This document shows positions 27,194 through 52,200 of a DNA stretch of 64,000 nucleotides, in pieces. Numbering within the stretch: position 1 is the first letter of the stretch; each line of letters opens with the position of its first letter. The stretch is from assembly GCA_015680685.1 (NCBI GenBank), contig MNCI01000164.1, positions 23,665 through 87,664 of the forward strand, read 5' to 3'. Both the position numbers and the translations under genes were made by a program. The stretch is from Gnetum montanum (taxonomy: Eukaryota > Plantae > Gnetophyta). The notes below the pieces were generated by a model, which ran no database searches, was not told the origin of the DNA, and saw only the letters and a program-made list of their open reading frames with translations.

Positions 27194-28040
27194 GTCTTGT
27201 TGTTGTTGTTTTTGTGCAGCCAAAGCCAAAATCCTTTCTCTAAATCCAATATTTACTTATTGTTTCATAGCTTACTCTGATTTGGGAATCAAAAATGTTC
27301 ATTTTCCTAGAAGTGATTTGCTTCACTTGTTTGGTAAACTGTTTATTCATTTACTTAGAAATTTGGATGTGAATAATGTGGTAGATTTCAATTCCTGTGG
27401 CTGATTTTTAATGTCTAAAACATTGAATTCATAGGAATTAGAAGATTTGAAATCCCCAGAATTCAAAAAGGTCAAATGTGAAGGTATATATGATGAAAGT
27501 AAGTCGATTTTTATTAATTCATGCTCTAGGGCCATGTCTTATGTAACAAAAAATTCGCACTACTTGGTCACTCCATTGTTCCTAGTTGCCAATATTGATA
27601 GGTAGGTCCAACTTATGATTTTTTTTTTAAATTATTTGTTTTAAAATAACAATATTTATTGTTTTTTTTCCTGTTATCTTCTCACTTTGTTTTTTTTTTT
27701 TTTTGAGAGAGAGAGAAAATGTTCGGGATTGTATTGCTGAAAATATAGTACAAGGAATTACAAAAAGTGGGTCAACAACGTTGGCCCATGTGGGGTGTGG
27801 TTACAACCCAAAATCGACATGTGAAACTATCCATCAGTCTTTTCCCTCAAAAACACTCAAAGCCAAAGACGGCAAGGGGGGGTACCCCCAATAAGGGGGG
27901 GCACCCCCCAACCTAAGGGGGGTGAACCCAAAATCATGGGGGGGCAAGCAAATGGGGGGGGGGCAACAACGACACCAAGGGGATTCCATGACACGTTAGG
28001 GGGGACAGAAATTGTAGCCCCACTCCAGCATGTGAAGGAT

Positions 28041-28238
28041 GTCCAACGTGTTACGGTGGATCTCTATGTCCATAAAACGGGTGCCCTGTTGGATGCCTTG
28101 CATGGCTGATTCTCGTCGATTCCTATCCGTCGTCGACATCCCCTCATCTAGATGGAAACGTGTCGAGGTCCAATGGATGTGGTTTCTGAGCTGCCCCGAA
28201 GTGCTGTCACAATTGATGCCAAGGATGAGGTATATACA
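28041..28238 (-). pseudogene. J-domain (DnaJ/Hsp40)-like segment at the end of LINE A ORF2
   Basis: CIYLILGINCDSTSGQLRNHIHWTSTRFHLDEGMSTTDRNRRESAMQGIQQGTRFMDIEIHRNTLD. Confidence 0.75.
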
Positions 28239-30059
28239 CCGTCCACTCCTAAGCCATTGACGTGCATTATGCTCATGTGCCTGGTCCAGCTAGCTCTGCC
28301 TCTGTGTCTCCTCCTCCTATTCCCGTTCGTGCTGGGCCCATTCAGCCTCCTCGTGCTCCCTTTGGGTGGTTTTCTCTTGAAGTAGTTCTTCTCTCACCTA
28401 GGCCCGAATCTTGTCCACCAACTCGGCTGGGGCTACATCAGCTAGAAGGGTTTGTTGTCTAACTCTCTACTGCTCCCTTTCCTGGAACTAGGTTTCCAGC
28501 TCAACCAAGGCCTGCGCAAGGGCTTCCTACCACTTTGCCTCCCAATCATGATCCTCAGCCTTACGTGTTGCGGTTGCAACCTCTTGAGCTACTTGCTGCA
28601 GAGCCTTGTCCTTGGTTTTATTGCGTCACAAGGTTTCGAGCGGGAACGTCTCCGACTCTACTGTGGGGTTTGGGGGTCTCCATCATCCCTGGCTACATTT
28701 CTTCTATATATAGGTCAGTGTAGGCTGGGTCTAGAGGCTCTCCTGGCTGGACAAAAGGGATGGACCAAGTGGGGGGCCTCCCCATGGGGGGGTAGCCGAT
28801 GGGTTTTGCCCCCCTCCCCCCTCCCACTGCCCCCTACCACAGGGCCAAGATGAGCCCTGAGTGATGGCTTCACCTCTATAGTTGTAAGGTCATCAGGAAA
28901 AATCTAGGCAAGTTAATCCTACGCCTTAACTTAAGGCAATGGAGGAAGGCGAAGTGCATTCCCTGGAGCTTGGATCCATTGCCAGACTAGGCAAAACATC
29001 TATCAACGAGATCTGTTGCTCAGGCCCAAATTTAGGGTAGAGAAGATCTAGGCACTTATCTGCTCTGCATGCGTGGCATTGGCCCATCAAAAAATAGTTC
29101 TACATCCTGTAGCTCGTGTGCAGAGGGTACTATGATTTCGTTGTCGGCCTAGGCCCCCAGACACCTAGTAATCGAAGCTTCTGTGATGATGACCTCTCTC
29201 CCCTGAAAGTAGGTATGACCGTTGTGCCAGTTAGTGAAGAAAGCATCATCTGACAGGTTTGGGTCTCCAACCAGCCATTGTAGGGCACCACTCCAGCTGC
29301 ACTATTCCACCATTTGCCAAAGTTCTTCCTCAGCCTGGAACGTGGCGTAATCAGGTTCGTATGTCGACATGACACCCATCATCGCCTCGATCTCTTTCCA
29401 CATGTTGTGAGCCTAGGAAACCACCAGCGGGGGGGCCAATCGGTGTTGCTGGAATACTATGCAGTTTCTTATCTTCCACGCTACCCATAAAAGTAGCATG
29501 GCCTAAGAGTCGCCAATGAGGGGCATTCTGGGGGCTGCTCCTGCAAAGTGCCATGTGGCTCGCATGTAGGCATAGCCAAATGTGAAGTGTCGTACCATTT
29601 TAGATGTGATGCCACATAAGGGATAGGTGTCATCAATAATGAGGTCCTATCTACGTAGAACCATGCGAACTGGTAGTGCGTCATGTCATATTAGCCACAG
29701 GAACATTTTGATTTTCTCAGGGAGCCACCCCCTCCAAATCTGCCACCAACTTGGTACCTATGGGTACTTGGCTATCATCAGGTGGTGTGGCACATGAACC
29801 AACCACCCTTGTGTCTGCATCTCACATGCATGGTGACAGAGCATCTGCCAGGGTATCAAGTCCTGCATCCCTGCCTCCCAACGACGATATTTTGCATTCA
29901 TAATGTAGATTCAGTAGGCTGGTTCCCCAAGCGGGCACATAAACCGGAGCAACAGGCGCTATTGTTCCATCATGAGTTTGTCCTTGAATTTGGAGATGCC
30001 TAGTCCCCTCACATTATGGGGGTGCATGTCCTAGTCCCAACTTACAAGGTGGATTTTTC

Positions 30060-30091
<32 letters not shown>

Positions 30092-30113
30092 ACCCCCCCC
30101 CCCCCCCCCCCCC
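30060..30113. repeat. Poly(C) run (~50 nt) inside LINE A ORF2
   Basis: Read directly. It sits where copies B and C encode a short Gly-rich WLGG.GG motif. Confidence 0.9.
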
Positions 30114-33100
30114 NTTTTGTTAACAATGGTGATCGGAGGGTTGGCGACCATCACAAAAAACTAGGTTATTGTCGTAAGAATCCATGATGCCACCACTAAT
30201 CACCCCTTTCTGGTCAAGAAATGATTGGCCCAATGTCCCATCATTCTCTCAACCTTTTCCAACAACGTATTCCAAGATATTCTTTGCCCCCACTGGAAGA
30301 GTGGGATACCCAGGTAGGTGTCTCTAACTGTTCTGAGTGGGATGTTTAGGACCTATACAACTTGGTTCTTAATCTGTGTATCCACATTGATAAAATGAGT
30401 CATTGACTTAGCCCTGTTAATCTCCAGTCCCAGCTTGTCCGCTAACCGAGAAAGTGCGACGTTGATGTGCCGCACTTGTGGGACCCCCACACGACTAAGC
30501 AACATTATATCATCTGCATAGTGTTCAGCCTGACATTCCACCCCTACAATGTCAAGGTCGTCAACCCTTGATTTCGTACAATAGTATTACATCAAATCCA
30601 TGGCGATAATGAACAGCAAAGGCGAGAGGGGGTCCCCCTACCGTAGGCCCCGCCTAGGTGAGGAAAGACCCCATAGGCACCCCCCCCACATCAAAGGAGA
30701 AACCTACAAATGATTCCATGTGGATGCACAGCTGGATAAAACCCTGGTCAAACCCCTTGGGTTACAAAATGGTGATCAAGGCTTCCCAGCTGATTGTATC
30801 ATATGCCTTGGTAATGTTGAGTTTGAGACAGAGCCCTGGGAAACCCGTAATTCAAAGAGAATGAAACACATTCTGCATGAGAAGAACCTGGTCCTACAGG
30901 GTTTGACCTTGCACAAAACCTATTTGGTTTACTCCAACTAACTTGGGCACTAGCGGTGCAAGCCTACAGACAATCAACTTCGAGAAAACTTGAATTAAAA
31001 CGTTGCATACCCTGATAGGGCAAAAGTGTTTTGGATGGTGTGCCTTCATTTGCTTTGGAATGCACACTATTCGAGAACAATTGAGCTTCCTTCAAACTTG
31101 CCTCTTTGCCAGCATGAGGTTGAAAGCATCTAGAATATTGGATCCCAAAATATCTAGGAAGGTCTTGAAGAATTCTAGGCTCCAACCATCTGGTCCAGAT
31201 GCCTTCCCTCTTGACATGTCACTGATGGTTGTGACAAGTTCCTACCATGAGAATGGGGCTAATAGTCGAGCATTATCCTCCTTTTTTAGCGCCTGCGAAA
31301 TTTGGACCGATATGGGCTTGGTGGGTCTTTTGGCCCAGATCCTTTCCCAGTGTGTTAGCTCTTAAGCGACATTCTATGGTTCATCAATTATCCCCCCCCC
31401 CCTCCATGGTGTGTAGACAACGTGGCTAGCTTCATCCTCGTGTCTTAGTAATGGCAAAGAAAAAGTTTGTTTGCCTATTCCCCTCTCGAAGCCATCTAAT
31501 CCATGATTGTTATCTCTAGTACATCTTCTCTTCTAAGTCAAGGCCTTGAAGTTGCCACAGAATGCTCTGCTATTCTTCTTGTAAGTCCTTCCTAGCCTCC
31601 TATTTGATCTGGATCTGAATTAGCCTATCCCTGAGTGTCCGCCAGCCCGTTCTAAATGAGAATTTATCCTCCATTAATAGGGCCTGGATAGGCCATTTCA
31701 GGCAAAGCAAACCATCTTTGAGGAAGTTCCTGGGATCTCCCTAACCCAGCTGGTAGTCTACCCAGATGTCCTCAACTAATGACCTCAACCATGGTTTAGA
31801 CAACTAGGTTGCCTCAAAATGAAAGGATCGTGGGGTCCAAGGCTGTTTGGGTCTGAGCGAGCAAACCAGGGATCGATGATCCAAGGTGACCTGTTCCTAC
31901 CCAGTAACCCACATGGCCAAGTGGAGGAGGAGGTCAAAATTGAATCAGACCCAGTCAATTCTAGAGAGGATGCAATCTAGGCCTTTCCTCCTATTACTCC
32001 AGGTGAATTAGCTATTCTCAATGGGCAGGTCCACCAGTGAGTGGACTGACAGGAAATCCTGAAACTCCTATGCACCTAAAGGGGAGGCTTCCCCACCAAA
32101 CCTCTTCCATGGATGTAGTCTCTGGTTGAAGTCCCCAACTATTAGCCATGCAAGATGGTCTTGTACCAGCGCCACTACACGTTCCATCTCCTATAGCCTC
32201 TACTCCCATTTCTGCGCCCCATAGAAGTTGGTTAGCCAAACCCCTTGGGATGGGATATGGACTATCATGGTCCATTGTGAAGAGTCTACCAGCGTCATGT
32301 TGTAGCGGGCTAAGATAGCCAAACCATCTGCCTGACCCATGCAAGGGTGCACATGGGATTTCCAACCATCCCAAAGGAGATGGTGTTATTCTGTCACCTG
32401 CAGCTTGGTTTCTTGGAGGCATACGATGTCATAACCTTCATCACAAACAATTCAACTTAGGGTATTTCTTTTATAGGGTGTACCCTATCCCCTACAATTC
32501 TAGCTAAAGATCTTCATGTATGCCCGGATGAGCGACGTTGGTAGACCTCCCGTAGGGTGTTCTGTAAACCCAAGTCAATGTTTTGTTGGGCTTGTCTAGC
32601 CCTAGATGAGCTTTCACTCGGGTGTTCGAGGCAACTCCCCCCCTCCTGTACCACCAGGCTACAGCCTAAGTCCTCGAATGGAGGCTCCTTCTCTGGGCGC
32701 TTATGGGACTTGGTGCTCCCCCTCACCACATTAACCCATTTTCCCAAGGGGGGAAGCACTATCCCGAGCATCGTTGGGTCAGTTGATGATGATGGTGGTG
32801 ATGTGTGGGGGGTGTTCATGTCAATGTTGTGGGCCGGTTAAGATGGGATAGGTGAGAGGCATAGTGGAGAGCTTTGTGGGAGGGGGGCAGGGAGGTGTAA
32901 GGTTTTTATGGATGGGGGGTCTGCGGGAGTTCATTGGGGGTGTGGGGAGGGGGACGGTGGGGGTGGAGATTATGTTCATGAGGCTCAAGGGAGGGGGGCA
33001 ATTCTTGGGGGGGTGGTTTCTGCAGGGGCAATTTTTGGGGGGCTAGCTAGTCTAGAGGTGGGTGTAGTCAGCCCTTACATCCCATCGTGACCTAGCCCAT

Positions 33101-34720
33101 GCTCTCAATAAGCTACCGAGCCTGGTCCCGCAGCTACGTTGGCCTAGCCCTCTGAACCTGACAATCCTCCTCCTAGTACCCAGGTTTCCCACACCATGCA
33201 CAACTTGCTCCATGACCCTCTTGGGTCTTCGATCTTTGTTCCAAGTCTAGCTCTACTTACAGGTTTTCAAACTCAACCTAGAGTTGTTCCTCCCCTCCTC
33301 AAAGTTCTAGCACTATTTCTTGAACCAGGTCTTTGGTCGACAGGCTTCGCCACAAGCAAAAATAGGTGAAACCCATGCACACCATCGACTGCGTGACTCT
33401 ATCGAATGTGATGAACTTCCCAAAGAACCCTGCCATCCGTTCCAAGAACTCTAGGTTCCACATCTCCCATGGGATCCTAGACACCTTAATCCACATCAAG
33501 TCCTGCATGAACAGGTCCATTTCACGATGCACCCCAGGGTACCAAAGGGTTAAAGCCAGCCCTCAAGCACCGTAGAACCATGGCCAGCCCAGTAAGACCA
33601 TGTCCCAAGCTTGCTAGGATGGAAGAATGAATAGCATCAAATCCTCAGACAAGCTCTGCACTTCCACTTGGCCAACTTTTTAGTTTTCGTGCACCCACCT
33701 GCGGATGAGCTCCATCCACGGACGAGCACCCTGGGACACAAACCAACCAATGAGGCTCCGCTGCATAGTGCAGACTCCCTCCCTCAAGGGGCTATTGACC
33801 TAGAGGTGCATCGTGTGGTCCACATGGGAGTGTGCCTTGATCTTTCCATCAGGTACTCACAGTGTGTCCCCCCCCTTGGTCCTGTCTCTCCCTGTTTCCC
33901 TATGGTTCACCACTGTCTAGGAATCTCAAGGTGTTGTGTCCTGCTTCAGTGTCGGCCAATTCACTATTGGTCATCCCAATGCTTGTCTGAACAAAGTGAG
34001 GTGTCATGAAAGAAATTGTAAATAGAAAAAATATTAAGGCTCTTTCTCTCTCTCAAAGTTCCTTTTTACATTCCTGTGAAAGATAGAACAAGATATTGAA
34101 AATTCAAATGACTAGTGTGTTGCTTCATTTTTCTTTCTTTACAAGGTAGTCCTAGAACACTATTTTAATAGTGTCTTAGTTAAGGGAAAAAATGTTCTGC
34201 TCCTCCTGGGTAGGGTTTGAATGAACAGAGTCTTCCCTTATTGCTTGACACCATTCACTTTGAGCTCCCTCTTGTGCCATTTGCCTCTCCCATTGTTTAC
34301 TATATTTATTACATATAAATGTAATGCTAATCATAGATCAATGAATAATCATGAAAAATTTTTAGAGTTAATTTTTAAAAATCATTTTTCAATGCTGATT
34401 TTTCAGATTTCTAGTTTATTTCCCTATCAATTTTCAATTTCTAAACCTTGATTCTAGATGCCATCTGATCCTATGTTTTTAACTATCCTATTTACCTTCT
34501 AAATGAAGCTATCATACTATATATGATTTTAGTTTTGCATCATGTATTTGTTTTGCAAATCCTGTAGGGATTGAGTACATCAAATATGTATTTTATGAGA
34601 TACTGGGAAATAAATTTTATGGGTGAAGACATTAATTAGTCATGGGTGTCTTAAGGGGAAATTATATTTTTTGTTTTGCATCATGCACCTTTAATTATAT
34701 CTTATTCTTTTGCTATCATT

Positions 34721-37700
34721 CACAANGAAGATCATCTAGGATGTGTATAAATGTCCTTCATTGAGTAAGCCATGAGGATCCTCTCATGGAATTGCAAGGG
34801 ACAAGGTACACCCTTCAAGCGTTGTACCCTTCTAGAAATGGTGGCGAGAGAGCATTGTGAAGTTGTGTGTCTCAAGGATACTAAGGTTCAACAATAGGAA
34901 TTTCATTGGTTGTGATGGCCTAGATGGCACTCACAAGGTGTGCCATGTTAGGGGAGAGCTAGAGGCATGGCCATCATGTCCAAATGGCCTTTTGTGGTGG
35001 TGGATGAGTCCTAGTGTAGCATCAATATATGGTTGGAACAACAAGGTTTGTGGATTACAAACTTCTATGAAGCTTAGTAATGGGAGGCATGGCTGCAGGA
35101 GCTAGAGCAAATTGCACCCATGATTGCTAATTGGAGGAAGTGGATCTTGCTGGGGAACTTCAACCAGCATCTTCATTCATGGGAAAAATCTGATGGGGAC
35201 ATGTCGGACCCTCTAGGGGATCAACAGTTTCAAGATTTTCTAACAGCCCATGGGTTGGTGAATATGGAAGTTAGGGGGTGTCAATTCACATGGTGTAATC
35301 AAAGAAAGGGACAAGACAGGCTCATGACTAACATTGCTTGTGTGTGGGTGAGCTTGAACATGCTGATGGATAAAGGGGTGCTTGTCATCAACAAAGAAAG
35401 AGTTGTGTTGGATCATAGGCTGTTGGTTTGTATGCTTGGGCCTTAGGAAGATAGGGAGCCACACCCATTCAAATTTAAACAACCATGGCTAATGAAGTCA
35501 TGGTTGAAATCATTAGTGGAGGATATTTGGGGAGCCTACCTATTGGGTAGTGATCCTAAAGAGTTTCTGAAACAAGGGCTGAGCTTGCTCAAACAACATA
35601 TTTGTAGGGTCAAGTCCAAGGACAAATTCTCTTTTTGATATAGTTGGAGGGAGCTCATGTAGCATTTGGAGTGGATCCAGAGGGCCCAAAAGCTCTATCA
35701 GAATCAACAGGATATTAAGGGGGTAGTGTTGCGAGAGCTCCAGACGCTTGACAAAGAGGAGAAAATGTATTGGAGACAAAAGGGATGGCTTCGATGGTTG
35801 AGGGAGGGAGATAGGAATACATGCTTCTTCTTTGCGGCGGCTTGTTAAGCTCACTTAGCCAAGATGATACCTTCTATTCAAGATGGAGACCAAATTGTTG
35901 AGGGAAAAAGGAGGTTGCACAAGCTCTCTTGAGGTACTAGTCTAACATTTGGCAATAATGGGTGACCAAACCAATCTCCATTGATATTTTGAGGGTATTA
36001 GGTGAGGAGGACAATCGTAAGTTGTTGGCACCCTTTACTCTGGGAAAATTGGAGGGGTATTGGCATCCATGAAGGGAGGTAGGGCACTAGGCCCTGATGG
36101 GTGGCTTGTGAATTTTTTTTGGACTTTTTCTACGGAGCTAGGGGAAAATATCCTGCATGCCTTTAACAAGATGTTTGTGTGGGGCCAAGTGAGAAGAGAG
36201 ATCAACTACTCACGATTGGTGATGATCTCGAAGTCATCAAATCCATTGAATCTAACGTGCTTTCATCCTATTGGGGTGTGAAACACTCTAATTTGGCTCT
36301 TTTAAAAAATGTTGGTGGCCCAGATGGGGCCCATGATGCAATGCCTAGTGGGAGAACAACAGGCTGGCTTTGTCCAAGGTAGATTTTTGTAGGATCAGAT
36401 TTTACTAGTGTAGGAGGTGATGCACTCACTATGACAAATGAGGTTTCTAGGCATTTGTTTGAAACTTGACATCATGAAGGTGTATAACATAGTATCTTAG
36501 AATGCATTGCAAGAGATCATGTTATGTAAGGGATTCCACCCACATTTTGTGAAATTGTGCCTGCATATCCAACAATTGGATGCATTCTCTTTAGATTGGC
36601 AGGGGGGTTGGTACTATGGGGATTTGCATCCCTTGGTAGGGGATCAAGACAGGGAGACCCCCTATCACCATATTTGTTCATTCTTGTGATGGATGCCATG
36701 AGAACTTATTGAAGGTCTGAAGGGGTTAGAGGGTTGATAGTTGGCCAGGGGGGATGTAGTGCCTAGTTGAGCATTATGTTCATGACACATTTTTATTCAC
36801 TCAAGCTATCATTCCCCAAGTGCTTGCTATTAACAGGGCTCTGCTACAAATGGCCTATGAGGTTGGGTTGGAGGTTAATTGAGGTAAATCCCTGGTGCAT
36901 CTACTCAATGTTGAGTAGATAGTGAAGGGGAGAATTGTTTAACTATTGGGGGTTTTACCAAAATCTAAGGAGGATACCTACTTGGGTTTATGTTTGTTTG
37001 ACTGGCATAGAAAGCAGGTGTGGGAATCCCTAATCAAACAAATGTAGGATAGAGTTGGCCACTAGACTAATCGATTTCTATCTAGGGCAGGGAGGTTGGC
37101 ATTGGCGGCATTGGTTTTGTTGGCTATGGCTAGGTACGCTACGTCGACCACCTCCCCCCCAGATTAGGGTGACAAAGGAAATTGATCGCATTGTGCATAA
37201 CTTCATTTGGTTAGGGGGCAAAGGGGGTGGCAGGATGCATTTGGTGGTGTGGGATATTGTGGCTAGCCCAAAGCAAGTAGGGGGTTTGGGGGTGCTAGGT
37301 TTTGATGATGTCTAGGCAATGGGGCTTCAAGGGTTGCTCTAGTGGATATGTGCTCGAGATAGTTGTGCTACCTAGTGGTTGCAGATTGTATGTCATAAGT
37401 ATAGGCAATAGGAGGCCACCAACAACAATTCAAATTTTTGGCATGCATTAGTTTCACATGTGCAAAGCATTTTACCAAGGGGGCTGATTAATGTGTAGCC
37501 AAAGCAACTGATCAAACATAAATACCTTGCTGTTAGGGGGTGGTGGTAGTTATGGAGGGGTAGACTCCCTAAAAAAATCAAATATTTTATTTGGTTGGTG
37601 AAACATGGTGCTATACTCATGTAGCATGTGCTGTAGAGGTGGGGAATGCAGATGAATGCCATGTGTCCACTTTGCATGGTGGGGGGAGAAACCATGCAAC

Positions 37701-39478
37701 ACTTTGCATGGAATTGCACTTATTCACAAAGAGTGTGGCAGGTTGCATGCATGCAACTATCAACTACATTGAATAGAGATTCACCAACCACTATCATCCT
37801 TTGGTAGTTGTGGTGGGCCTAAAACTAATTCTATACTAATTGGCTTGGGGATGTTACTTTGTTCAAGGGAGTGAGAATTACACTCATCGAGGTGGCCATT
37901 GCTAGATATCTGCATACACTGGCAGAAGGGGAGGAGGTGGGGGTGTGGGGTAGAGGCTTGCAAGATGCACAAGAATTCTTTTTGGGGAGGTGCCCAAGAC
38001 GGTGAGTGGACAAGTCCCCAAGTTGGCCTTGCAACCTATCTGGTAGGATGCCAAGGTGCTAGTGGAATGATTTTTCGTCCACTCTGGAAATGCTTGGAAA
38101 TTGTTGGGGATGCATTTTGAGTTCCTCTTCTTCCTTCGGAGGGGAATTGGGGTGAACTTGCCTCACTTTCTCTTGGGGGTGCTACCTCAGAGGAGGCAAG
38201 GGACACACTTGAGGTTAATTCTCATGCTCTAGAGAGTGGTGAGGGGTTTGGGGGGGTGTCAAGGGGTTCTAGGGCAACCTGGTGCTCTTGTGATGAGGGC
38301 AGTCTACAAGTGCAGATGGAGGTGGTATGTTCCACCATTAATGATGGACATTTCTACTAATGTGACTGAGTCCAAAGGGGAAGCTCTAGAGGGGAGCACA
38401 GACATGGGGGTGATTGGGGAAGTAGAGGCTAGGGAGTTGTTATGACCCCTGGGGAGACTGGAAGGACCCCAGGGAGGGGATGGAACTTTGCCGGTGTAGG
38501 GGAGGTCAGAGGAAGGGGGTAAGGGGGGCAGTTAGAAATGACAGGTCTGTGGACAAATATGGGCGAGGTGGAGCATGCTTTGGAGGAGGAGTGGATGGTC
38601 TGGGTGCAGAGATTACGGTGATAGGAGGAGGAGCTCCAACGGGAGCTAGAAGGATTGAGATGCAGGGAGGAGGAGTTCCAGTAGGAACTCAAGAGGCTAA
38701 GGGAAGCAACAAGGATAGACCGGATGCATTGGGATTTCACGAACATTGCTAGGCTACAACTGAAAGAGAAGCTATGACAACAAATCTAGGAAGAGCTTCA
38801 AGAGGAAGCCAGGCTCTAGGAGGAGCTTGAAAGGGAGGTGTAATGGTGGTGCTAGGAAAAGGAGTGAGAGGAGTGGAGATCCAAGCCCGCCTAGATCAAG
38901 TGCATGAGAATCACACATGCAAGTGGCTAGAGGAAGGGAAGTGCCCTTATGAGATTTTGAACATTAGGCATACCGTGTCGTTGGTTGCACTTTTGCAACA
39001 TATCTGCCACAAGAGCCAAAAGCTTCACCTTGCTACGAAGGGGAGTGCTAAGGAGCATGCTTAGAAGAAAGAAAGCTTCAAAGAATTTCAGGAGGCCATG
39101 GCCTTTGTGGAGACTGAGAATTATTGGGCGGTGTTGGATGATTTCATGGCCAAGAGAGGACCTACTGTTGGTGCTTGATGCTCCCATTGCATCTTTAGGT
39201 GGTCTATTGTGGAGTTTTGTGTTGTCTGGATTAGGTGTAGCTTCCTTTGAGGGGGTTTGACTTTGTGATTTTGTTGATTTATGGTAGTTTTTTTGGTTTT
39301 TTGTTATTGTCATGAGTCCTCGAAGGGGATTCTGGTGGATGAGGTGGGGGAGGTTGTTCCCCCTCCCAGTTTTGGGGGGAAGGAGAGATGCTCTCTCCCC
39401 TCTTTTTGATGTTCTATGATTGTACATATTCTATTTTATTTAATTTAAGCCCAAAGTCTTTTCAGAAGAAAAAAAAAA
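34721..39478 (+). mobile_element. L1-clade LINE copy B, 5'-truncated, with extended ORF2
   Basis: ORF2 from 34772: MRILSWNCKG, WILLGNFN, WLREGDRNTCFF, ALGPDGW, RQGDPLSPYLF. Poly(A) ends at 39478. Degenerate TSD GCTATCATT/GCTACCCTT. Confidence 0.92.
38942..39145 (+). pseudogene. J-domain-like segment at the end of LINE B ORF2
   Basis: CPYEILNIRHTVSLVALLQHICHKSQKLHLATKGSAKEHA*KKESFKEFQEAMAFVETENYWAVLD. Confidence 0.78.
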
Positions 39479-41285
39479 GCTACCCTTGGGCTTGTAGCAC
39501 AAGGAAAAAAATTTTACCAATGAGTTATCAATAATTCAGCTTTTTTAAATAAATGTCAAGCTTTGAAGACTAATGACTATGACTTCTTATTGCTATTTCC
39601 CATCTATAGTCATTAAAGTTATAATTACCTTTACAGTAAAACTATAACAAACAATTTAACAACCTTGTGAATGCATTGGTTGTTACTGATTAATGATTAA
39701 ACTCTATAAGTTGCATTTGCAAATATCCTATGAAGTTTTCGATCAATGATCCTTATGCCACTGGTCAATAAGTGCTTGGTGGAGTGGATACCTATACAAT
39801 CCATGATCTCGGAGATTAACAAAATAGACTTGATATTTGATAGATGATCAGAACCAATGTATGCAATGAGTTATGAAAATGAAAGAAAAAGGTTCTTGCT
39901 CTTCATTTTCCATTTGTCTAGGGGAGTAGTGGTGAGAACCCATAGGCACATGTGGTCTCTCAAGGCTTTCATGTTCAACTCCTTAAAGTTCTTTCACACT
40001 TTTTGCAAACCTAGGTCTTCTCATGCACTTCCAATTTGTGGTACTATCTCAATTATATGAAAATCCATAAGCTGCTGTAGTTTAAATTTAAAACAACATG
40101 GAAAGGCCCAATTCTCTTGTGTAGCATTATGGTTGTTTGTAAGTTGTTTGACATGAATGTTATTTCTCAATTGTTTCATATTACACAATTAAATGCATAC
40201 ACTTTTCACATGCCTTTATTTATGTTGCAAAGATATTTCCCTGAATTTTCAGCAACATGATTAAATTAAAAAAGTATTTGTTAGTTAAAACTTAAAACTG
40301 TGTAAACAATAAATTCTCTACTCAAAGTACAAAGTACAAAGAAGTGGTAGGAACATTGTGGATCCACAAATCTTAGTCACACGAATCTTTCTTGCTTGTC
40401 ATGTCCTTATTACTAAGTTTAGTTAGAGAACATCTCCCCAGCATGCCAAACTGTTCAAGAAGTTCTCTTATTGAATAGCAGTTTGTAATATCATTATGTG
40501 TATTTACTATATAGAACTATAGCGTGGAATTTTTCCTGCATCCTACTAGTTTTGTTGGGTATAAAAGACATAGTATCATCTTTACTTTTCACATGTTTTT
40601 GCTAATCTATAGGGTTGGCATATCTTTTACTATACCTAGTAGTGTGGCCCTGTTATTCCTAGTATTGTTCATCACACCTTGTTTCTTTATTAGTGTACTT
40701 TTTTTAAGCATATTATGGTCTACTTTTAAATATTTAGGACTTAAATTTTCACTTTCCTTTGAAAACATATTACCACTTTTTCTTACTGTAGTTTTGCTAA
40801 CAAATTAGAATATTTTGACCCAAGATAACCAATGATGTATTAAAGGTAGAAATATATTTTGATTCTTGATTTCCTAACAAAATTCTGGTCATAAGTTATG
40901 ATGTAATTTTCAAAAATGCATGCACCAAACTAGAACCTTGCTACCATAAGCAAAACCATTGTTATTGAAGCTACGATCAATCTAAAACCAACCCATGACC
41001 CATGCATTGAATACAATAAACTAAAGAATTATTTTTGTGGTTGCTACACAACCTTTAAAGAAAAGGCCCATAAATGATTATATTTTTCAAGGAAATTGAG
41101 TTTTTAAAATGTTTTTTAAATCTTAAGTTCATCATTTGTATGATGTTTACTTTGAATTTGTGGACTACTATAAAAGCAAGTAGATTAACCATAGCATATT
41201 GTTATATATCCCTTTCAAATTATTGGAAGCAAATTTCCCGATAAATTTACTTTCTTCATCTGATTATAAAGCAGTTCTTTGTTAA

Positions 41286-41460: not shown

Positions 41461-41673
41461 GTTATAATATTTAACAATTTGCTATCGTTAATACTCTTAT
41501 GCATTCATTCTTACATTTAATATCTTATATGAAGATAGCGTCTAGGTATAAAAGCTAAAATGCATTAATTGATAAAGAGCATCTAGCTATATAAATTAAT
41601 TATTGGCTTCTCAAAAACATTCTATAGTGGCCATTTCTTGGTTAATTTAATATTTTTGGTGATATCTTTTTAT

Positions 41674-41920
41674 GAAACTGATTCCACTTTTGAAACTAGA
41701 GAAGTTGTTGGAGTAATATATGGAAGTGAAAATCTCATTATACTTATGTTGGCATAGGTGCCATGGCCCAGGAAGCTAAAGTATGTAAGAATACATTATA
41801 TATTAAAGAAATTGGAATAGAGCATGGTGCAAGAAACCCATATTCTGTTCCAAAAGATGTGAAAGCTTTCATTCAGTACTTTGTCATGCCACTTGATCAT
41901 CTAAATTATGCATTGACTTG
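41674..41920 (+). pseudogene. SURF1: SURF1 pseudo-exon
   Basis: EVVGVIYGSE...[deletion/frameshift]...AMAQ...NPYSVPKDVKAFIQYFVMPLDHLNYALTW, with GT donor at 41921. Confidence 0.9.
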
Positions 41921-44080: not shown

Positions 44081-44256
44081 TGACAAGTTCAATTCTAGTG
44101 GCTTATATTATGACCCTATGGATCCTTAGGGTCTACACATAGACTTTATAAAACAACTAAGCTTTAGTTTCTATTGAATTGGTCTTGTTTTAACTCCACA
44201 AATTGTGGAACAACTAAAATAATTGAAAAGAAAACCACCAATTGTATAATGCAAAT

Positions 44257-44701
44257 ATAAGTCTGAGGCAGTGAGATGGTGGATGGAGGAGGGGTTTTCT
44301 CATTCTAGGAGGCTATGAATTTTGTGGTGACTAGGCAGCAACATGATATCCTCGACCGGGTGCTTGCTAGAGTGCTTTCCACCTATTGTTGTGCTAGCCT
44401 ACCCCACCATGCTTGAGGCGTTTTGGGTTTGGGTGGTGTACTGTTTGTTGGATGGGCTCTGATGCTCTCTTGGTTGGTGTTGTTGTTAGGTTTTGTGTAG
44501 TTTCTTTGGGTTGGGGTGCTTGGGTGTGTGGGCTTCTTGGTTTGGGTAATCCATCTATCACTTTTTTGGGTTACTGAGGTATTGGGTTTTGGTGGGTTGG
44601 GGTTCTTTACCCCTTGGGGAGCTACCTCCTTTAGTTTTTTTGGTTTAAGGTCTTAGTTGTACATACATTTTTCTTTAATACAATTTTACCCAACCTTTTA
44701 G
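44257..44701 (+). mobile_element. Short 5'-truncated copy D of the J-domain LINE family
   Basis: F*EAMNFVVTRQQHDILD (44303-44356) aligns without gaps to FQEAMAFVETENYWAVLD of copy B. GT-rich 3' UTR. TSD AATGCAAAT at 44248-44256 and 44702-44710. Confidence 0.75.
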
Positions 44702-45816
44702 AATGCAAATTACAAATCCAATCAATAAGATTTGGCTTGTTGTAAAGACTTGTGACTTGTATTGTACTGATTGTAGGGTTAATCCGTATTGGTTATATTG
44801 AGATATGCAAGAACTATTTAACACTAGGCGCTAAAATTGAAATTTGTCTAGTAAATTCATAGCGGCTCATGGTTTCCATGTGGGCATAGTAAAATACTTC
44901 ACTTTAAGGTTTAGATTCTCTTGATGTAATTTTTAAACTTTTACATCATATTTAGGCCCAATGCTTGTCCCACCAAGTGGGGTCGTAGGATAGTGGGTAG
45001 ATGAGTGGAAGTTTAACCTCTTCTAAAGTGGCTATGGCTTGGCTCACACCTAGTTGTTACTACCTAATAGAAGAACACCTCAATGTGAATTTTTAGTAAA
45101 GTTAATTATGTCTTGTTTGGACTGATCTAAGTGCATGATGTCTTTGTTTTAAGTGGGTGTTGTTGGAACTGAAAGGAGGCTATATATGCCGAGGATATGC
45201 AGCCACCATAATATTTTGGTAGAACTTACCATATACCCTCAAGACATTCAACCAGCATTGTAGTACGTTGGTAGAAATTACCAAATGTTAAACATCAACT
45301 TGTTACCTCTAAAGCACAGGAGGTCTTTATTTGAAGTCACCCTTACATTATTTAACTCTTAATCATTACTAGAAATATGTGATTGTGAGTCATGATTTCG
45401 TTCTTAAACTGTAAGGTACTCATATTCTATATTCAAATTGGAATGACTTGTAATTTGTTAATTCATTTATAATATAGATAGATAGTTGTTTACATTCCAT
45501 TGAGTATATTGCTTTCATATTTATAGCATAAGATTTCAAATCTACTCTCATACAAAGCACAGGTGAATAATAGATTGTCAGGAAGAAGTAATTTTTGTAT
45601 AATTATAATTTTCCATTAGGGGAATACCAAAACAATAGGTAGTTTGCAGAAACAAGGTGTTTAAAGTGCTCTAAGCTTTTTTAATATGCATCTCTTGCAT
45701 TATTTATTTCTTTTGAAAATCGATTCAAAAGCACTTATTGCCTATGAACCTAGCTTGATATATCTAAAAATCATTTACCCTCTTGTCTAAAATCTAACTG
45801 TGTGGTTTTATAACAA

Positions 45817-45871
45817 GCATTCCCTCTCTGCTGCAATAACATTTATGGCATCAAAGAGATTGAAGAAATAG
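45817..45871 (+). pseudogene. SURF1: SURF1 last pseudo-exon
   Basis: (W)HSLSAAITFMASKRLKK* (cf. WYSLSAAVTFMA.KRL). Acceptor reads CAA instead of CAG. Confidence 0.85.
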
Positions 45872-46207
45872 TCATTACTATCAATTTCTTCTCTATTTTA
45901 AGGACTGTATGCTCACTGAATTACAGTTACTATCAGTTGCAATGTTGCAGGCAAATGAGGCTTGATGCATTTTCTCGATGTTATAGTAAATTGAAAAGAG
46001 TTGGTTCCTTGGGTTGCAGAGATCTGCATGCTGATAATTGCTGGTGAGGAACCAGATTTTTGTCTTTTCTTTCATTAAGATGGTGTGTATTTTCCAAGTT
46101 TTAATTCCATTTTTGATATTTAGTTTATAAAGCCAAGTGAAAATGATGATACAACATCTAGGTAGATGTAATAGTACAAATGAACTCTTTATTAACAAGG
46201 AAATTAA

Positions 46208-49200
46208 GGTCTTTGCTCTGCTAGGTGAGAGGGGTTAGGATGGGTGGGAATAGGAATGTTGCAAATGGTACGAGGGGTGTAGTACGGGAGACTTCACTGA
46301 ACGAGGCATAGGGGACTGGCCCAGAGGGGTGTGCAATGGGGGGATTAGGTTTTGTGTATGGGGATGTTGAGAAGTGTTCCCATTTGGATAGCATAATGTG
46401 ATTATGCGTTACTAGCCCTTCGATGGAGGGGGTGTGGACTATGGAACGTAGCCTGATAGGGCGTTTCGTGTCCTTTGGAGCCCAACCTAAGATGGACCTT
46501 GTCCAAAGATGGATGAAGGACGTTTGAGGGATGGGAGTGGTGGAAGTGCAGAGTCTGTTGGATGACCTACAGCTGTTCATTTTCAAGAAGGTGGAGGAGC
46601 AAGATACAGTCCTCCAGGGTGGGCTGTGGTTTTACAGTGCCAAAGCGCTAGTGCTTATGCACTAGTGGCCAGGGGTGCATTGAGAGGTAGACTTGTTCTC
46701 ATGTGTGCCAAATTTGGGTGCGCACCTTTGGGATCCCATGGGAGATGTGGAGCTTGGACTTTCTTAGGCATATTGCGGGGTTTTTTGGGGATTTTATCAC
46801 CTTCGACATGGTGACGCAAGCGATGGAGTAGATGGTCTTTGCCCGATTCTACATGTGGTGGGCCTTATCCCCAAAGGACTTGGTCAAGGAGATTATGCTT
46901 GAGCTCCCTAGAGGCAAGGAATAGCTTCAATTGAAATTTGAAAATCTAGAGACCAAGCAATTGGTGGAGAAAGTGTCATTGGCTTGGGGGTGTTCCCTTT
47001 GCAGGAAAAACGGCCACCATGAGATTAACTGTAGGTTTCGGGGTGTGGGGGCATGATAGGCTAAAGATGTGGTGCGTGGGGTAGGGATGGGGCTACGGGG
47101 CAAGGCCTAGGTGGTTGTGAGGCGAAGGGGATAGGTACAGGTGTCACTCTTTGCCCCTCGTGGCCCCCTGCCATGGCTAGAGGGGGCATGTAGCCCACCT
47201 CCTGCTACCCTGCCCTCAGTCATGTTGACTGTGCCAAGGATTGAGCTTCCTCTGCTAGGTGATTGGGTTAATGTTGTTATGGGGAGTTCTAAGAGGTCCA
47301 AGGAGGCCTGTCCATCATTAGAATATTTCAATAGCTTTCTGGTGTCATTGGTAGGGGGTCGGCCAAGTCACCCTTCCAAGCTTTTGTCGCAAGATAAGCA
47401 GACGAAGAGGAGTATTGATTTGGGTTTACAAAAAACCTTGTGGGAGGTCTACTAGTGATGCTCTATTGGTCATGCATGAAGCTCCTTTTGTGGAACTATA
47501 GGGGATAGGGTATGCCCTATAAAAGATATATCCTACAACAAATTATGTGAAATGAGAACTACAATATTGTTTGCTTGTAGGAAACCAAACTGTAGACATC
47601 AGAGGCCTTCCACCTACAATGGGATGGGTGGGGCATGCAGGGGGCTTGGGCATCCTAGCATGCCTTAAGATTCTGTTAATTGATTCATCGCCATGGGGTT
47701 TTACCGTTCACATTCCCTCCCTAGGCCTTTGGTTGATGAACTTCTATGGGACCTACGCTTGGAAGCTACGTTTGTTGGAGTTGGAAAGGTTGGTGGCATT
47801 GGTCTTGGATCAAGGGGCATGGCTAATTGTTGGGGATTTCAACTAGTGGCTACACTCTTGGGAAAATTTGGGCACAAGCTATGCATGCCCCTCAGGGGCC
47901 CAACAGTTTCAACACTTCTTGATGCCACGCTTGTTGGCTAACTTGGAGATTGAAAATTGTTAATTTATGTGGAGCAATAGGCATAGGGGAGCTGATCGGG
48001 TCTTGTCTAGAATCGATTAGGTTTGGATTAGCTCAGAGTTGGTTCTATAGTTGGACGTGCAGGTCACAAGGTAGGAGTGGGTCACCTTGGATCATTAGTT
48101 GCTCATTTGTTGCCTTGGGCCCCCACAGAGATGGGTTCCTTGATTATTTTATTTTGAAGCATCCTGGTTGCTCAAGCCATGGTTGTGTCCCTTGGTCAAA
48201 GACATCTAGGTAGATTACTGATTGGGCCAAGGAGACCCTAGGAATTTTCTTCTAGAGGGCCTCCTACACCTGAAGTGGGCTATTAGGTCCATGGTGATGC
48301 AAGATAAATTTTTGTTCCGTGTGGGCTGTATAGACCTCAAGTCCAGGTTGGCCCAAATTCAGAGTTGGCAAGAGTTTGGAGAGGATCTGTAGGATGAGGA
48401 AATGAAAATTTTGATGTAGTTGCAAGCACTTGACTTGGAGGAGGAAACATATTGGAAACAACGATTGCGAGTCAAGTGGTTCAGGGAGGGTGATAGACAA
48501 ATGAAATGCTTTTTTGCTATGGCCAAATCTTGTAGGTTGGACCAGTGGTAGGTGATGTTGAAAGACAATGCGTTTCTGGTGGATGATCCAGAAGATGTCG
48601 CTTGTGAGTTGGTGGTGTATTAGGGGGGTGGTTTGGGCAAAGTGGCCCTTGCCGTTTTTGATGTGGGTCTCATGGGTGTTGGAGGAAGGAGACAATTTTT
48701 GGTTACTTGGTTTGTTTACTTGGTAGGAGTTGAAGGAGACTATTTTCTCTATGTTGGAAGGTAAGGCGCCTAGGCTTGATGGCTAGAGCATCAAGTTCTT
48801 TAAGAAATTTTTCAATATTGTGGGGCCCAATGTGCTTGATGCTTTCAACGTAATGCTAGCCAGATGATAGGTTTATCGTGAGATCAACTACTCAAGGAGT
48901 GTTTGTATCCCAAAGTGGGCTGATGCCTCATTTCCAACTCATTTTCAACCCATTGGGGTTTGCAACATGTTGGTCTAAATTTTCTCCAATATGCTTGTTT
49001 GGAGGTTGGTCCCCATCATGCCAAAACTTGTCAGAGATCATCAGATGGTGTTTGTTCAAGGACAGGTCTTGTAGGACTAGGTGTTCCTCATGTAGACTCT
49101 TTGCGTCTTTTGAAATTCCCTAGATTGTGTTTCAAATTGGACATCATGAAGGCCTACAACATAGTTAGTTGGGAGGCACTCGCCACCATCATGGTGCAGA

Positions 49201-52200
49201 AAGGGTTTGACTTGGAATTCGTATGATTATGTGTCCACCTGCAGGCATTAGCTGCATTTTCCTTTGACATGGGTGATCATCTTTGGGATATCTTGTCCCT
49301 TGGAAGGGGTCTACGGCAAGGGGACCCTCTTTCGCAATTGCTTTTTATCATTTCCATGGACTTACTGAAGTACTATTGCAAGGCAGCAGGGGTGGGGGGG
49401 CACTGATGGTTGCAAGCGTTGAGTGTCTTGTCAAACGTTATGTTGATGACACAATGCTTCTCAGTTGGGCTAGGCTCCCATAGGTGTAATGTATTAATTG
49501 GGTGCTTGCATTAATGGCGACAGAGCTTGGCTTTGTGGTGAATTGGAAGAAGTCATCTACACACTTCCTCCATGTGGATGCGCGGGTTAAGTGTTGGGTC
49601 ACGCAGGTGCTAGGGTTCCCTCCTAGGATGGCTCAAGACTCCTATCTTGGTATCCCACTCTTTGCTTGGGGTCACTGTGCAACTTGGGGTGGGGGGGGGG
49701 GTTTGAAAAAAATTGAGTGGGGGGGAACATTGGGCTCATTGATTTGTCACTTGGAAAGGGTAGTTGGTGCTGGCATTTGGGGTGCTCAAAGCTATGGTGT
49801 GCTTTGTGGCTACTATTGCAACCCCCCCATAGGCCATAATCCAAGTCATTAATCATCTCATTTGAAATTTTGTGTGGTTGGGTGGTAGAGGAGGGAGCAA
49901 ATTACACCTAGTTGGGTGGGACCATATAGTGTGTCCTTGGGAAGCGAGGGGTCTAGACATTTCCTGATTCAAGGATGAGCTAACAATTAGATAGCAATGG
50001 TTGCTATTACAGTTCAACCACTAGGATGCGGGGACGGCACAATGGGTTTGCATCATGAGAGAAAAATATGCTAGGTGACAGATTTAGGTGTGTGACTTGA
50101 GACCTTGGTAGATAGTTTGTGCTCATGCACAATGCATGCAGGTGCAGGGGTGGATGGAGTTGACACTAGGCCAACTCATTAAATTAATGTACCTGTTGGT
50201 ACACGGTTGGAGGTAGATTTGGTAGGGGAGATTGCTAGAAAAAATAAAGGTTTTTCTTTGGCTCCTCAAGAGAAATGCCTTGCTAGTTTGGGCAACTTTA
50301 ATGTTGCACAACCTTAATATTGACACCACCTACCCTCTCTGTGACAATGGGCCTGGGATCGTGCTGCACTTTGCTTTCCAATACCCTTACATGCAGGACA
50401 TGTGGTGCATGACAGGATGGCTCACCTCTTCGTTGCTCTTGAAAGACTCCAAGCCCACATTGCTTTTATGGGAGGTATGGAAAATCTGAAATCACAAAAT
50501 CTTATGACAACAATGTGTGTCCATCCCTGTGTAGGTGGTTTCCCAAACCGAAAAAGTGTGGGTAGAAATTGTGATCGTAATGGGGGTCACGTCGACCTAC
50601 GAACTAGACTACATGGTCTTCTACACACACATTGAGCTCTAGGGGTAGGTCGTGTGGTGTGGATGGGATACTCTCCTCCCATGGTTGCATGGTGACCTTG
50701 CCCTTCTTGATGATGCCTTTTGATGACGCCTTCTTCACAAATTGGCTGGATGACTAGATGAAATTTTGGTGCATGGAAATCACGCTGACAGAGATGGTGA
50801 TCACTAAGTATTTGGGGGCCTAGGTAGATGGTGAAATTATTCTTCCCATGGCCTAAGGGTTACAAGATGCTGACCTATTATTTGATGGGCTAGTGACACA
50901 CATGCAAAGTTAGCAGGTGCCCAAGTCTGCTTTGCTGCCAGTTTGGGGTCAAGTTGTTGAGCTAGTCGACTGTTTCTTTGTCCAGTCTGGCAATTGGTCC
51001 AAGCTTCAGGGTACACACTTTGCATTCTTGAAATGCTTGAAATTTGGGCTCAAATTCAACTTGCCCCACTTTTTCTTTGTTGCCTTGCGATAGTGGAAGA
51101 GGGGTCCCCATTCTAGGCTTATTTTAGCCCTTTGGTAGGGCACGACAGAGGTGCTGCTGGTGGCAGGTTCTCTTGGCTCTTCCCAGTCGAGGATTGTTTC
51201 AATGCCTGCGATGGTTTACACATGAAAGCGGGCGAGCTGGCGAGGGTTGGCCACCTTGGGCCCAATGGCCATGACAAATGCGTTTCCGCTTATAGAGTCT
51301 AGTTGGGATGTGCTGCTCATCGCGGAGCTCGACTAAGTTGTGGAGGCGACGGCAGTGGTGGCTCAGGTCGAGGAGTGGCGGGCTTGGCGACCCGATGGGA
51401 GGAAACCCTCTAGCAGGCATAGGCTAACTTGGAGGCCTACTTTCGTGAGTAGGAGCAGGAGTTGCCTAGGCAATAGGCCTTGCTCAAGGAGGGATCCCAT
51501 GCCTGGTTGGTGGATGAGCTCTGCGTCTAGGTTTGGGAGGAGCTGCAACAGGAGGAAATTACATGTGGGGAAAGGGAATAGGAAGAGGAGAGATAGAGAC
51601 AATGGCAGCTAGATAGGGTGCACGAATAGAGCATGCAGTAGTGGTTTTGTGAGGGGAGATGCCCATATGTCATGTTGGGCATAAATTGCGAGTGCTCTTG
51701 GGTGGGTTTCAGGTGGCACATCCACCATACCTTTGTGTGTTCCCATCTAGACAATGGGGGATCAATTGGGGAGCGAGGTCATCATGAGGCCGCCTTGCAG
51801 GAGTTCTAGCAGGCGGCTAGTTTTATGGGTTTTGAGCTGCATCATAATACTTTGGATATCCTCCACACTCTCAAGTGGCCACAATGTGAATTCCATGCTC
51901 TTCCCAGGCACTTGTAGCGGCTCTAGGGCTACCCGAGGCCCTATCTGTGGTTTGGTTTTTGCCTTGTGGGTGGAGGTGTGTGTTGGTTAGTGTTCCTCTT
52001 GGCTAGATTGGCCTCTATTTTTTTTGCGTGGTGTGTGTTTGGTGCATTTGGGTGTGGGGGTTTGGGGGTTGGTGTCGTCCTTCAATGAACTCTATTTGTG
52101 GGGGCCTGTCTGGGTTGGGCCTGGTGGCGGCTGGACTAAGGTCGGGGGTGTCTATTTCCCCCCGCCTTGTAGATTGGTCCGTTTGGCCATTTGCAGGTGG

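Follow-up and report, generated by a model that had tools for sequence, protein, structure and literature searches.

A probable diverged DnaJ-type J-domain at the end of the coding region of a plant L1-type LINE family in Gnetum montanum

The window analysed here is a 64,000-nt stretch of Gnetum montanum contig MNCI01000164.1, and all positions below are window positions. It contains four decayed LINE copies, designated A to D, with the following features.

27689..33700, minus strand: LINE copy A, near full length and decayed, from ORF1 to the 3' A-run (from collinearity with copy C and Pfam; 5' limit approximate)
33302..33562, minus strand: ORF1 piece of copy A, DUF4283 (PF14111, 32.0 bits against a cut-off of 27.2, E 1.1e-7)
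30356..30586, minus strand: RT piece of copy A with YADD (RVT_1, E 2.3e-4, 21.3 bits; a fragment and hence below the cut-off)
28840..29241, minus strand: accessory domain of copy A, lying between zf-RVT and the linker, frame 0 mod 3 (tblastn between copies, E 1e-7 to 1e-16)
28591..28833, minus strand: Gly/Pro-rich linker of copy A, variable in length (depth falls about ten-fold; contigs skip 95-256 nt)
28290..28590, minus strand: charged coiled-coil-like stretch of copy A, in the frame of the J-like block (from translation)
27999..28289, minus strand: stop-free 97-codon C-terminal piece of copy A, with the J-like block at 28041-28238 and the HLD codons at 28146-28154
27689..27998, minus strand: stop (27996-27998), 3' UTR and terminal CT-rich motif with A-run of copy A (from sequence)
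34836..39475, plus strand: LINE copy B, of a more divergent subfamily and without ORF1; begins in the endonuclease, with matches to A and C from about 35150
35081..35443, plus strand: Exo_endo_phos_2 of copy B (E 2.7e-4, 21.2 bits against a cut-off of 27.4; a 121-residue fragment)
37637..37804, plus strand: zf-RVT of copy B (29.9 bits against a cut-off of 27.5)
38942..39145, plus strand: J-like block of copy B, HLA at the HPD position (internal stop 39062-39064; ORF stop 39176-39178)
46500..52283, plus strand: LINE copy C, near full length and decayed, collinear with A (5' limit approximate)
50226..50486, plus strand: zf-RVT of copy C (E 1.3e-5)
51660..51857, plus strand: J-like block of copy C, HLD at the HPD position (internal stop 51807-51809; ORF stop 51915-51917)
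44303..44416, plus strand: fragment D, 5'-truncated within the J-like block, of which it keeps the helix III-IV part (44303-44356), and continuing into the 3' UTR, to about 44690

The elements are supported as members of a very abundant plant L1-type LINE family. Their parts are ordered EN, RT, zf-RVT, an unnamed accessory domain, a variable Gly/Pro linker, a charged coiled coil and the J-like domain. This last domain sits 12-24 residues before the stop in all four copies, the stop of fragment D being at 44414-44416, and beyond the stop lie roughly 300 nt of 3' UTR and a short A-run. The RT pieces show YADD/YVDD and GDPLSP motifs. The accessory domain of copy A matched no Pfam family, and no link was found between the accessory domain and a gypsy extra ORF elsewhere in the window. 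Copies A and C are collinear from ORF1 to the 3' end with 63-78% identity, and the last 55 nt of A are 78% identical to the end of C. Copy C also matches copy A across ORF1 (the DUF4283 region), whereas copy B has no such match; DUF4283 is the dominant ORF1 domain of plant L1 elements (PMC5203782). The first-pass annotation had counted three full copies, which has to be corrected, as only A and C reach ORF1. All four copies are dead relics, heavily decayed and with many stops and frameshifts; CAG>TAG stops are frequent among the LINE copies.

Re-translation placed all four blocks where they had first been noticed, at the end of the LINE coding region. The three full blocks, of A, B and C, align codon for codon over 66 codons with no gaps, and the gap-free alignment in fact extends over 88 codons, the additional 20 or so lying upstream. 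The block of copy A has no stop, and those of B and C have one internal stop each. Pairwise DNA identity within the block is only 40-60%, and the copies have only 35-47% of residues in common. Between A and C, pS is 0.66 and pN 0.33, with identities of 0.64, 0.71 and 0.44 at codon positions 1, 2 and 3 respectively. Third codon positions are thus the most divergent, which shows that the block was coding and that it stayed so while the subfamilies diverged. Searched against the whole window, a profile of the block matched at these four places only. The match in fragment D (44303-44398, E 2.2e-8) agrees with the earlier claim that this copy carries part of the block, of which only the last third is present. 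Since this 5'-truncated copy begins inside the block, the block moves with the element.

Public reads gave a view of the family beyond the window. The query comprised 2,401 letters, and the comparison was based on the 40 best-supported of 687 alternative-letter rows. In each of two species, more than 2,000 contigs cover the 3' part of copy A including the J-like block, and the depth over the block equals that over the rest of the 3' part in both. Abundance on this scale in at least two species shows that the family is no one-off chimera. In the frame of the coil and J-like block, family letters that are nearly unanimous remove four private stops of copy A. The stops at 28319, 28400 and 28469, in the coil, are sense in nearly all family contigs and RNA reads, and the private stop at 29058, in the accessory domain, is sense by the family majority letter. 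Relative to copy A, A/T>G/C changes are twice as many as the reverse. Near-unanimous family letters specify Glu at block position 16 and Ala at position 52, both of which are J-consensus residues.

The J-likeness of the block is far above the level given by the window or by shuffled profiles. HMMER and hhalign align 63-66 columns of it onto DnaJ residues 6-70 with one 3-residue gap, and HMMER aligns the Tyr of Y-x-x-L-G-I to the His without a gap, bearing out the claim that this spacing is that of E. coli DnaJ. By hhalign, P was 1.3e-4 against DnaJ alone and 4.5e-5 and 1e-4 against two J-domain alignments (63-66 columns), with a probability of 53-69%. None of 300 column shuffles reached the real score of 32.6, the maximum being 17.2. 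When a narrow bacterial J-HMM was run against the six-frame translation of the window, the B block ranked first and the A block second. A J score matrix applied to about 126,000 window frames gave A and B 14-17 bits, above every other position (null maximum 7.1), with the block of copy B scoring best in the whole window. Once C>T and G>A decay was allowed for, the ranks were 1 for B, 3 for A and 4 for C, and the score of copy C rose from -5 to 42 bits.

Several features of the block resemble the DnaJ/Hsp40 J-domain (PF00226). It is some 66 residues long and keeps the distance from Y-x-x-L-G-(I/V) to H-x-D unchanged, its helix III fits the pattern F-x-x-(I/F)-x-(E/Q)-A-x-x-x-(V/M), and an Arg-type codon stands four residues before the final (L/Y)-D. 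Block positions 22, 23, 27 and 62 read CAY, TGY, TGG or CGN across the copies, as expected from decayed Arg codons, and correspond to DnaJ K26, R27, K31 and R63; the basic residues of helix II would be among those restored in this way. Unlike DnaJ, the LINE block has His-Ile in place of Ala-Tyr in helix II and lacks the conserved Leu, it has no HPD, it stays below the Pfam threshold, and it lies at the extreme C-terminus of a retrotransposon protein, behind a coiled coil. A likeness of the upstream W-x-E-G-K stretch to auxilin-type J-domains was considered and dropped, because its spacing does not fit.

Searches across databases gave much weaker values, with the J-domain match reaching only E ~0.6-1 (0.65 for the PDB profile and 0.69 for Foldseek, with a value in this range also when hhalign P is scaled by the number of families). 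When PDB sequences were searched with a profile of the copies, 12 weak matches resulted, eight of them J-domains and all of these over DnaJ residues 6-67; DnaJ scored E 0.65 and an unrelated dehydrogenase E 0.56. An AlphaFold2 model has helices at the expected places at low confidence (mean pLDDT 59), and with this low-confidence model most of the top 20 Foldseek matches were J-domains (best E 0.69), the first being a 'pseudo DnaJ' J-domain. No stop-free piece of A, B, C or D matched Pfam DnaJ at E up to 10, a weak test for copies that are decayed pseudogenes; pieces flanking a stop were searched separately and never joined. The identification made at first reading is partly supported, at the level of profiles, by hhalign, shuffles and window ranking, and not by a Pfam DnaJ match of any single copy. 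A profile search of 1.84 billion representative proteins returned no relative and one spurious tandem-repeat protein only, a word-based search with the 97-residue piece of copy A returned no match, and the ESM Atlas returned no named family, only unnamed clusters with scores of 0.90 or below. Metagenome scans, by protein and by a degenerate DNA pattern matching B and C, also gave no match, so that no intact relative was obtained from the protein, ESM Atlas and metagenome searches.

On this evidence the block that ends the coding region of the four copies is most likely a diverged DnaJ-type J-domain, as judged from sequence comparison. The best explanation, to which we assign a probability of roughly 0.75, is that a diverged homologue of the DnaJ/Hsp40 J-domain forms part of the 3'-terminal coding module of the LINE and would recruit Hsp70 in active members of the family. 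Points against this explanation are the missing HPD, the departures from the J consensus in helix II, the poor structure model and the weak database-wide values. Whether this module belongs to ORF2 is less clear than was first proposed. The annotation had ORF2 itself end in the J-domain; the frame of the coil and J-like block differs from that of the preceding accessory domain in all three copies, with offsets of 1, 1 and 2. Copy A shifts frame somewhere within 28690-28990, and copy B has an additional shift between coil and J-like block. Frame tracing found no in-frame join of the block to ORF2 in A, B or C. Because of these frame differences, a separate downstream ORF for the coiled coil and J-like domain is equally as possible as an ORF2 terminus. 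A TAG common to A (28836-28834) and C (51136-51138) was considered as the true ORF2 stop and rejected as proof, since B reads AGA there and shared stops in CAG codons arise independently; the family reads CAG at the 28319 stop of copy A.

The likeness to J-domains could also have arisen by chance, in a helical, lineage-specific C-terminal LINE tail sharing no descent with them. No curated model reaches its threshold, the dehydrogenase scores like DnaJ in the PDB search, and short helical domains yield many weak matches. Moreover, the J-domain was picked by eye from the same letters. Such an origin nevertheless appears quite improbable, as the match covers the domain from end to end in a single register, with one short gap, holds across three copies that have only 35-47% of residues in common, and is stronger for the profile than for any single copy. 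It also improves both when genome-typical decay is allowed for and when family-majority letters are used, and J-domains dominate two different ranked lists, from the PDB profile and from Foldseek. LINEs do transduce flanking sequence, and the block might instead be a fragment of a host J-protein gene that a single event of 3' transduction or template switching brought in and that has since been carried unused; with all copies in the window dead, present function is unreadable from them. Against such a passenger stand the gap-free alignment and the deficit of non-synonymous change across subfamilies that differ by 40-60% in DNA, the equal read depth of block and 3' part in two species, and the location of the block upstream, not downstream, of the conserved 3' UTR and terminal motif. 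We regard this origin as extremely improbable.

The catalytic tripeptide raises a different question, namely whether the domain is J-derived and yet unable to fire Hsp70. The codons at the HPD position were re-read and confirmed as CAT CTA GAT (HLD) in A, CAC CTT GCT (HLA) in B and CAT CTA GAC (HLD) in C, so His-Pro-Asp is absent from all three full blocks. If the masters of the subfamilies already had HLD or HLA, the domain could serve as a scaffold or as a decoy for the partners of host J-proteins. Leu stands at the Pro position in three of three full blocks, from at least two deep subfamilies, and B lacks the Asp as well; the A>G expected at 28150 is not among the best 40 of the 687 family rows; and the first Foldseek match is itself a pseudo J-domain. 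A decoy would also have a target in the silencing of methylated transposons by SILENZIO and Hsp70 (PMC8616336). However, a single CHG-type C>T change separates each of the three Leu codons from a Pro codon, and changes of this kind are very frequent in these copies. Sites that are both polymorphic and hypermutable would also come low in a ranking of which the best 40 of 687 rows were used, so that the absence at 28150 carries little weight. An inactive J-derived domain of this kind is, on balance, unlikely. The earlier suggestion of an ancestral HPD decayed at CHG sites is a possible one, in that each of the three Leu codons, had it once been CCN, would lie at a CHG site; HPD itself is read in none of the window copies. 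A further reading, which we judge highly improbable, is that the J-derived tail serves counter-defence: by imitating SILENZIO-type J-proteins it would capture or misdirect the host's Hsp70, or its partners in silencing, at the RNP or the locus of the element. The tail might use an active HPD for this, or might be a decoy that lacks HPD.

Under the preferred reading, that of a J-domain homologue functional in active members, the domain would recruit host cytosolic Hsp70 to newly made LINE protein or RNP and trigger its ATP hydrolysis. Hsp70 would then clamp the element's own proteins and may assist in cis with their folding, with assembly of the RNP or with remodelling. In the window copies, HLD and HLA would have arisen from a Pro codon through C>T decay at methylated CHG sites. 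This putative co-chaperone function is drawn by analogy from what J-domains do elsewhere. The large T antigen of polyomaviruses provides a precedent, in which a selfish element uses its own J-domain to engage host Hsc70 for its own replication complex. That J-domain is N-terminal and encoded by a DNA virus, with an intact HPD and a function that has been shown, whereas here a C-terminal domain with a putative function is encoded by a non-LTR retrotransposon.

The literature search found no published J-domain in a LINE, in agreement with the first-pass annotation, and an L1 domain survey of 503 genomes does not mention DnaJ. Foreign domains at the 3' end of the coding region are known from plant L1 elements with an acquired RNase H (PMC5203782, citing Smyshlyaev 2013) and from insect R1/TRAS elements, whose ORF2 has a viral-type helicase at its C-terminus (PMC4686597, PMC5563155). 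The present family resembles both in that the 3' coding region is extended by a foreign domain kept through subfamily divergence, and differs in that the acquired domain would be a chaperone cofactor and not a nucleic-acid enzyme. In Arabidopsis, according to PMC8616336, citing Ichino 2021, the J-domain protein SILENZIO is recruited by MBD5/6 to methylated DNA and works with Hsp70s to silence methylated transposons. J-domain and Hsp70 partners at plant transposons would be common to both cases; unlike the LINE block, SILENZIO is, in that account, a host protein acting against transposons.

If the identification is correct, a recruiter of Hsp70 would for the first time be known from a retrotransposon. 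The large proteins of LINEs fold with difficulty and depend on host chaperones; since the domain is testable alone, it would give direct access to the way in which chaperones come into the retrotransposition cycle. To our knowledge, non-LTR elements have so far captured RNase H, helicase and esterase domains, and a chaperone cofactor would be a new class among them. That plants, according to PMC8616336, silence methylated transposons with a J-domain protein raises the question of mimicry between element and host.

Copies A, B and C, three decayed LINE copies, and the 5'-truncated fragment D carry near the 3' end of their coding region a stretch of about 66 residues that resembles a J-domain (the block), which the first-pass annotation had read as a DnaJ/Hsp40 J-domain ending ORF2 of an L1 family. 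That observation was confirmed overall, and re-translation bore out the positions and reading of the block in all four:

28041-28238, minus strand: copy A block, stop-free, inside a 97-codon open piece (27999-28289)
38942-39145, plus strand: copy B block, with one internal stop
51660-51857, plus strand: copy C block, with one internal stop
from 44303: fragment D, final third of the block only

The alignment is gap-free as claimed (codon for codon, 0 gaps) and continues so for about 20 codons 5' of the block. A block-profile search of the window gave matches at these four sites only. In each of them a stop codon lies 12-24 codons past the block end; beyond it come some 300 nt of 3' UTR and a short A-run. 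The 5' truncation of the fragment D insertion falls within the block, a type of cut typical of LINE copies. A terminal CT-rich motif is common to A and C: their final ~55 nt (27689-27743, minus, and 52233-52283, plus) show 78% identity and close with a run of CT dinucleotides and then a short A-run, and the rest of the 3' UTR is barely alignable. This shared terminus may be a recognition element for the reverse transcriptase.

Pfam searches of stop-free pieces identified DUF4283 in ORF1 of copy A (32.0 bits, cut-off 27.2), Exo_endo_phos_2 (E 2.7e-4), RVT_1 (E 2.3e-4, with visible YADD/YVDD and GDPLSP motifs) and zf-RVT (29.9 bits, cut-off 27.5). Among the ORF1 domains of plant L1 elements DUF4283 predominates (PMC5203782), so the elements are classified, from their domain content, as plant L1-type LINEs. 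Copies A and C align collinearly (63-78% identity) over the whole stretch between ORF1 and the 3' end. Copy B belongs to a more distant subfamily and starts within the endonuclease, so the description of three full copies holds for A and C, which reach ORF1, but not for B. Stops and frameshifts are numerous in all copies. The LINE bodies (28000-34000, 36000-40000 and 46000-52000) have 45-51% G+C versus 27-35% in the flanks, and GC skew on the coding strand of B and C is strongly positive (0.18-0.29). Just outside copy A, in AT-rich DNA, an inverted repeat flanked by TA repeats (26381-26541 and 26573-26733; 161-nt arms, 87% complementary, 31 nt apart) looks MITE-like, resembling a perfect hairpin.

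Between zf-RVT and the block lie an accessory domain, a Gly/Pro-rich linker and a charged, coiled-coil-like stretch:

28840-29241, minus strand: accessory domain of copy A, about 130 residues, 3' of zf-RVT
37829-38229, plus strand: the same domain in copy B
50731-51132, plus strand: the same domain in copy C
28591-28833, minus strand: Gly/Pro-rich linker of copy A, joining accessory domain to coiled coil

The accessory domain is recognizable between copies (tblastn E 1e-7 to 1e-16); it had no Pfam match, and nothing similar was found in the rest of the window, the gypsy extra-ORF region (8808-12610) included.

Public sequencing runs, available under coded names, were mapped on copy A (27700-30100) at a likeness of at least 80%. 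Over 2,000 contigs from each of organisms A and B mapped there; the abundance of this LINE family is about the same in a second organism with a different label. Depth on the block was similar to the remainder of the region. The linker had about ten-fold lower depth, and contigs from two species omitted 95-256 nt of it, which indicates that linker length differs among family members. Oligo-dT RNA reads (753) fell on both strands and give little information on expression. From copy A to the family reads (runs X1, X6 and X12), A>G and T>C differences occupy ~255 places versus ~145 for C>T and G>A, about twice as many, and this pattern marks copy A as heavily decayed by C>T change. Family letters turn its stops into sense codons in both the coil/J frame (28319 and 28400, Gln; 28469, Glu; 28685, Gly) and the ORF2/accessory frame (29058, Gln; 29505 and 29913, Trp; 29688, Arg). 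Across the wider family both frames are therefore open; the stops of copy A are private decay.

Between the A and C blocks pS was 0.66 and pN 0.33, and identity at codon positions 1, 2 and 3 was 0.64, 0.71 and 0.44; the block therefore evolved under protein-level constraint in its own frame.

Homology of the block to J-domains is likely, with a probability of about 85%. The weight lies in the agreement among methods, the single register, and the strengthening of the signal by the profile, by allowing for decay and by the family letters. Single copies gave no match to Pfam DnaJ with the E limit relaxed to 10, and in a database-wide view each method alone reaches only E ~0.6-1. A profile in which each stop-free piece formed its own row, with pieces flanking a stop kept separate, gave 12 weak matches among PDB sequences (E 0.56-1.7); eight were J-domains (DnaJ, Hsp40, DNAJC5, DNAJB9), aligned over the full domain in a single register with one 3-residue gap. 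In hhalign comparisons with E. coli dnaJ, cbpA, djlA and hscB and DnaJ fragments from the protein database, the block profile gave P values of 1.3e-4, 4.5e-5 and 1e-4 (probability 53-69%, 63-66 columns). The real score of the stop-free-piece alignment was 32.6, versus 7.9 ± 2.6 (maximum 17.2) for 300 column shuffles. A narrow bacterial J-HMM, run unfiltered on the six-frame translation of the window, ranked block B first and block A second. A J-domain matrix with flexible gap placement, slid across ~126,000 positions and frames, gave 14-16 bits for A and 14-17 bits for B, with a null maximum of 7.1. The C>T decay dominant here is reversed by T>C and A>G steps. When each codon could also be read one such step back, in the score only, B, A and C ranked 1, 3 and 4 among all windows, and copy C rose from -5 to 42 bits. 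An AlphaFold2 model was poor (pLDDT 59), with helices at the places of J helices I, II and III/IV; Foldseek found no significant match (best E 0.69), and J-domains made up most of the top 20.

Near-unanimous family letters change the copy A block (minus-strand translation) at positions 2 (Pro), 14 (Trp), 16 (Glu), 52 (Ala), 54 (Ser), 56 (Val) and 60 (Leu), of which Glu16 and Ala52 are J-consensus residues (DnaJ E20 and A53). Positions 22 (CAT/TGC/CAC), 23 (TGG/CAC/CAT), 27 (CGT/AAG/TGT) and 62 (CGT/TGG/CAT/CAT) correspond to DnaJ K26, R27, K31 and R63, the helix II basic residues and the conserved helix IV Arg. Single transitions in CGN Arg codons at CpG sites yield such His, Cys and Trp codons. 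The helix III spacing F-x-x-(I/F)-x-(E/Q)-A-x-x-x-(V/M) is that of DnaJ (F47, I50, A53, L57), whereas helix II has His-Ile in place of Ala-Tyr and is without the conserved Leu. At the His-Pro-Asp (HPD) motif between helices II and III the middle codon is CTA in A and C and CTT in B. With CCN in its place, each of these codons would form a CHG site, so the ancestral Pro suggested earlier is compatible with the codons, although HPD is seen in no copy in the window. The best 40 of 687 family differences from copy A do not include 28150, in the middle HPD codon; polymorphic hypermutable sites would have a low rank in such a list, which makes this absence neutral.

The in-frame ORF2-J fusion of the first-pass annotation is not seen in the window. 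The J frame is offset from the accessory frame by 1 in A and in B and by 2 in C, the accessory domain of A being in frame 0 and its coil and J part in frame 2, and B has an additional shift between coil and J. The J part is possibly a fusion to ORF2 that indels within the length-variable linker have interrupted; possibly, too, it is a separate ORF downstream. A TAG directly after the accessory domain, common to A and C, was considered as a true ORF2 stop and not accepted as proof of one, because B has AGA there and CAG codons can yield shared stops independently. Closer to the block, and still upstream of it, independent copies have an in-frame stop at the same codon: TAG in A (28317-28319) and in C, TGA in B. 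At the A position most of the family has CAG, so these shared stops come from hypermutable codons and are no evidence of a real stop.

A full-text literature search for J-domain or DnaJ with LINE, non-LTR or retrotransposon found no such fusion described, and DnaJ goes unmentioned in a survey covering the L1 domains of 503 genomes. Known parallels of acquired domains are the RNase H of plant L1 elements, the helicase of insect R1/TRAS (PMC4686597, PMC5563155) and the m6A demethylase domain of an orchid gypsy element (PMC9289625). A co-chaperone mechanism involving Hsp70 would be plausible for the block. The plant J-domain protein SILENZIO silences methylated transposons together with Hsp70s (PMC8616336), and on this analogy a decoy or mimicry role for the block would also be worth keeping in mind.
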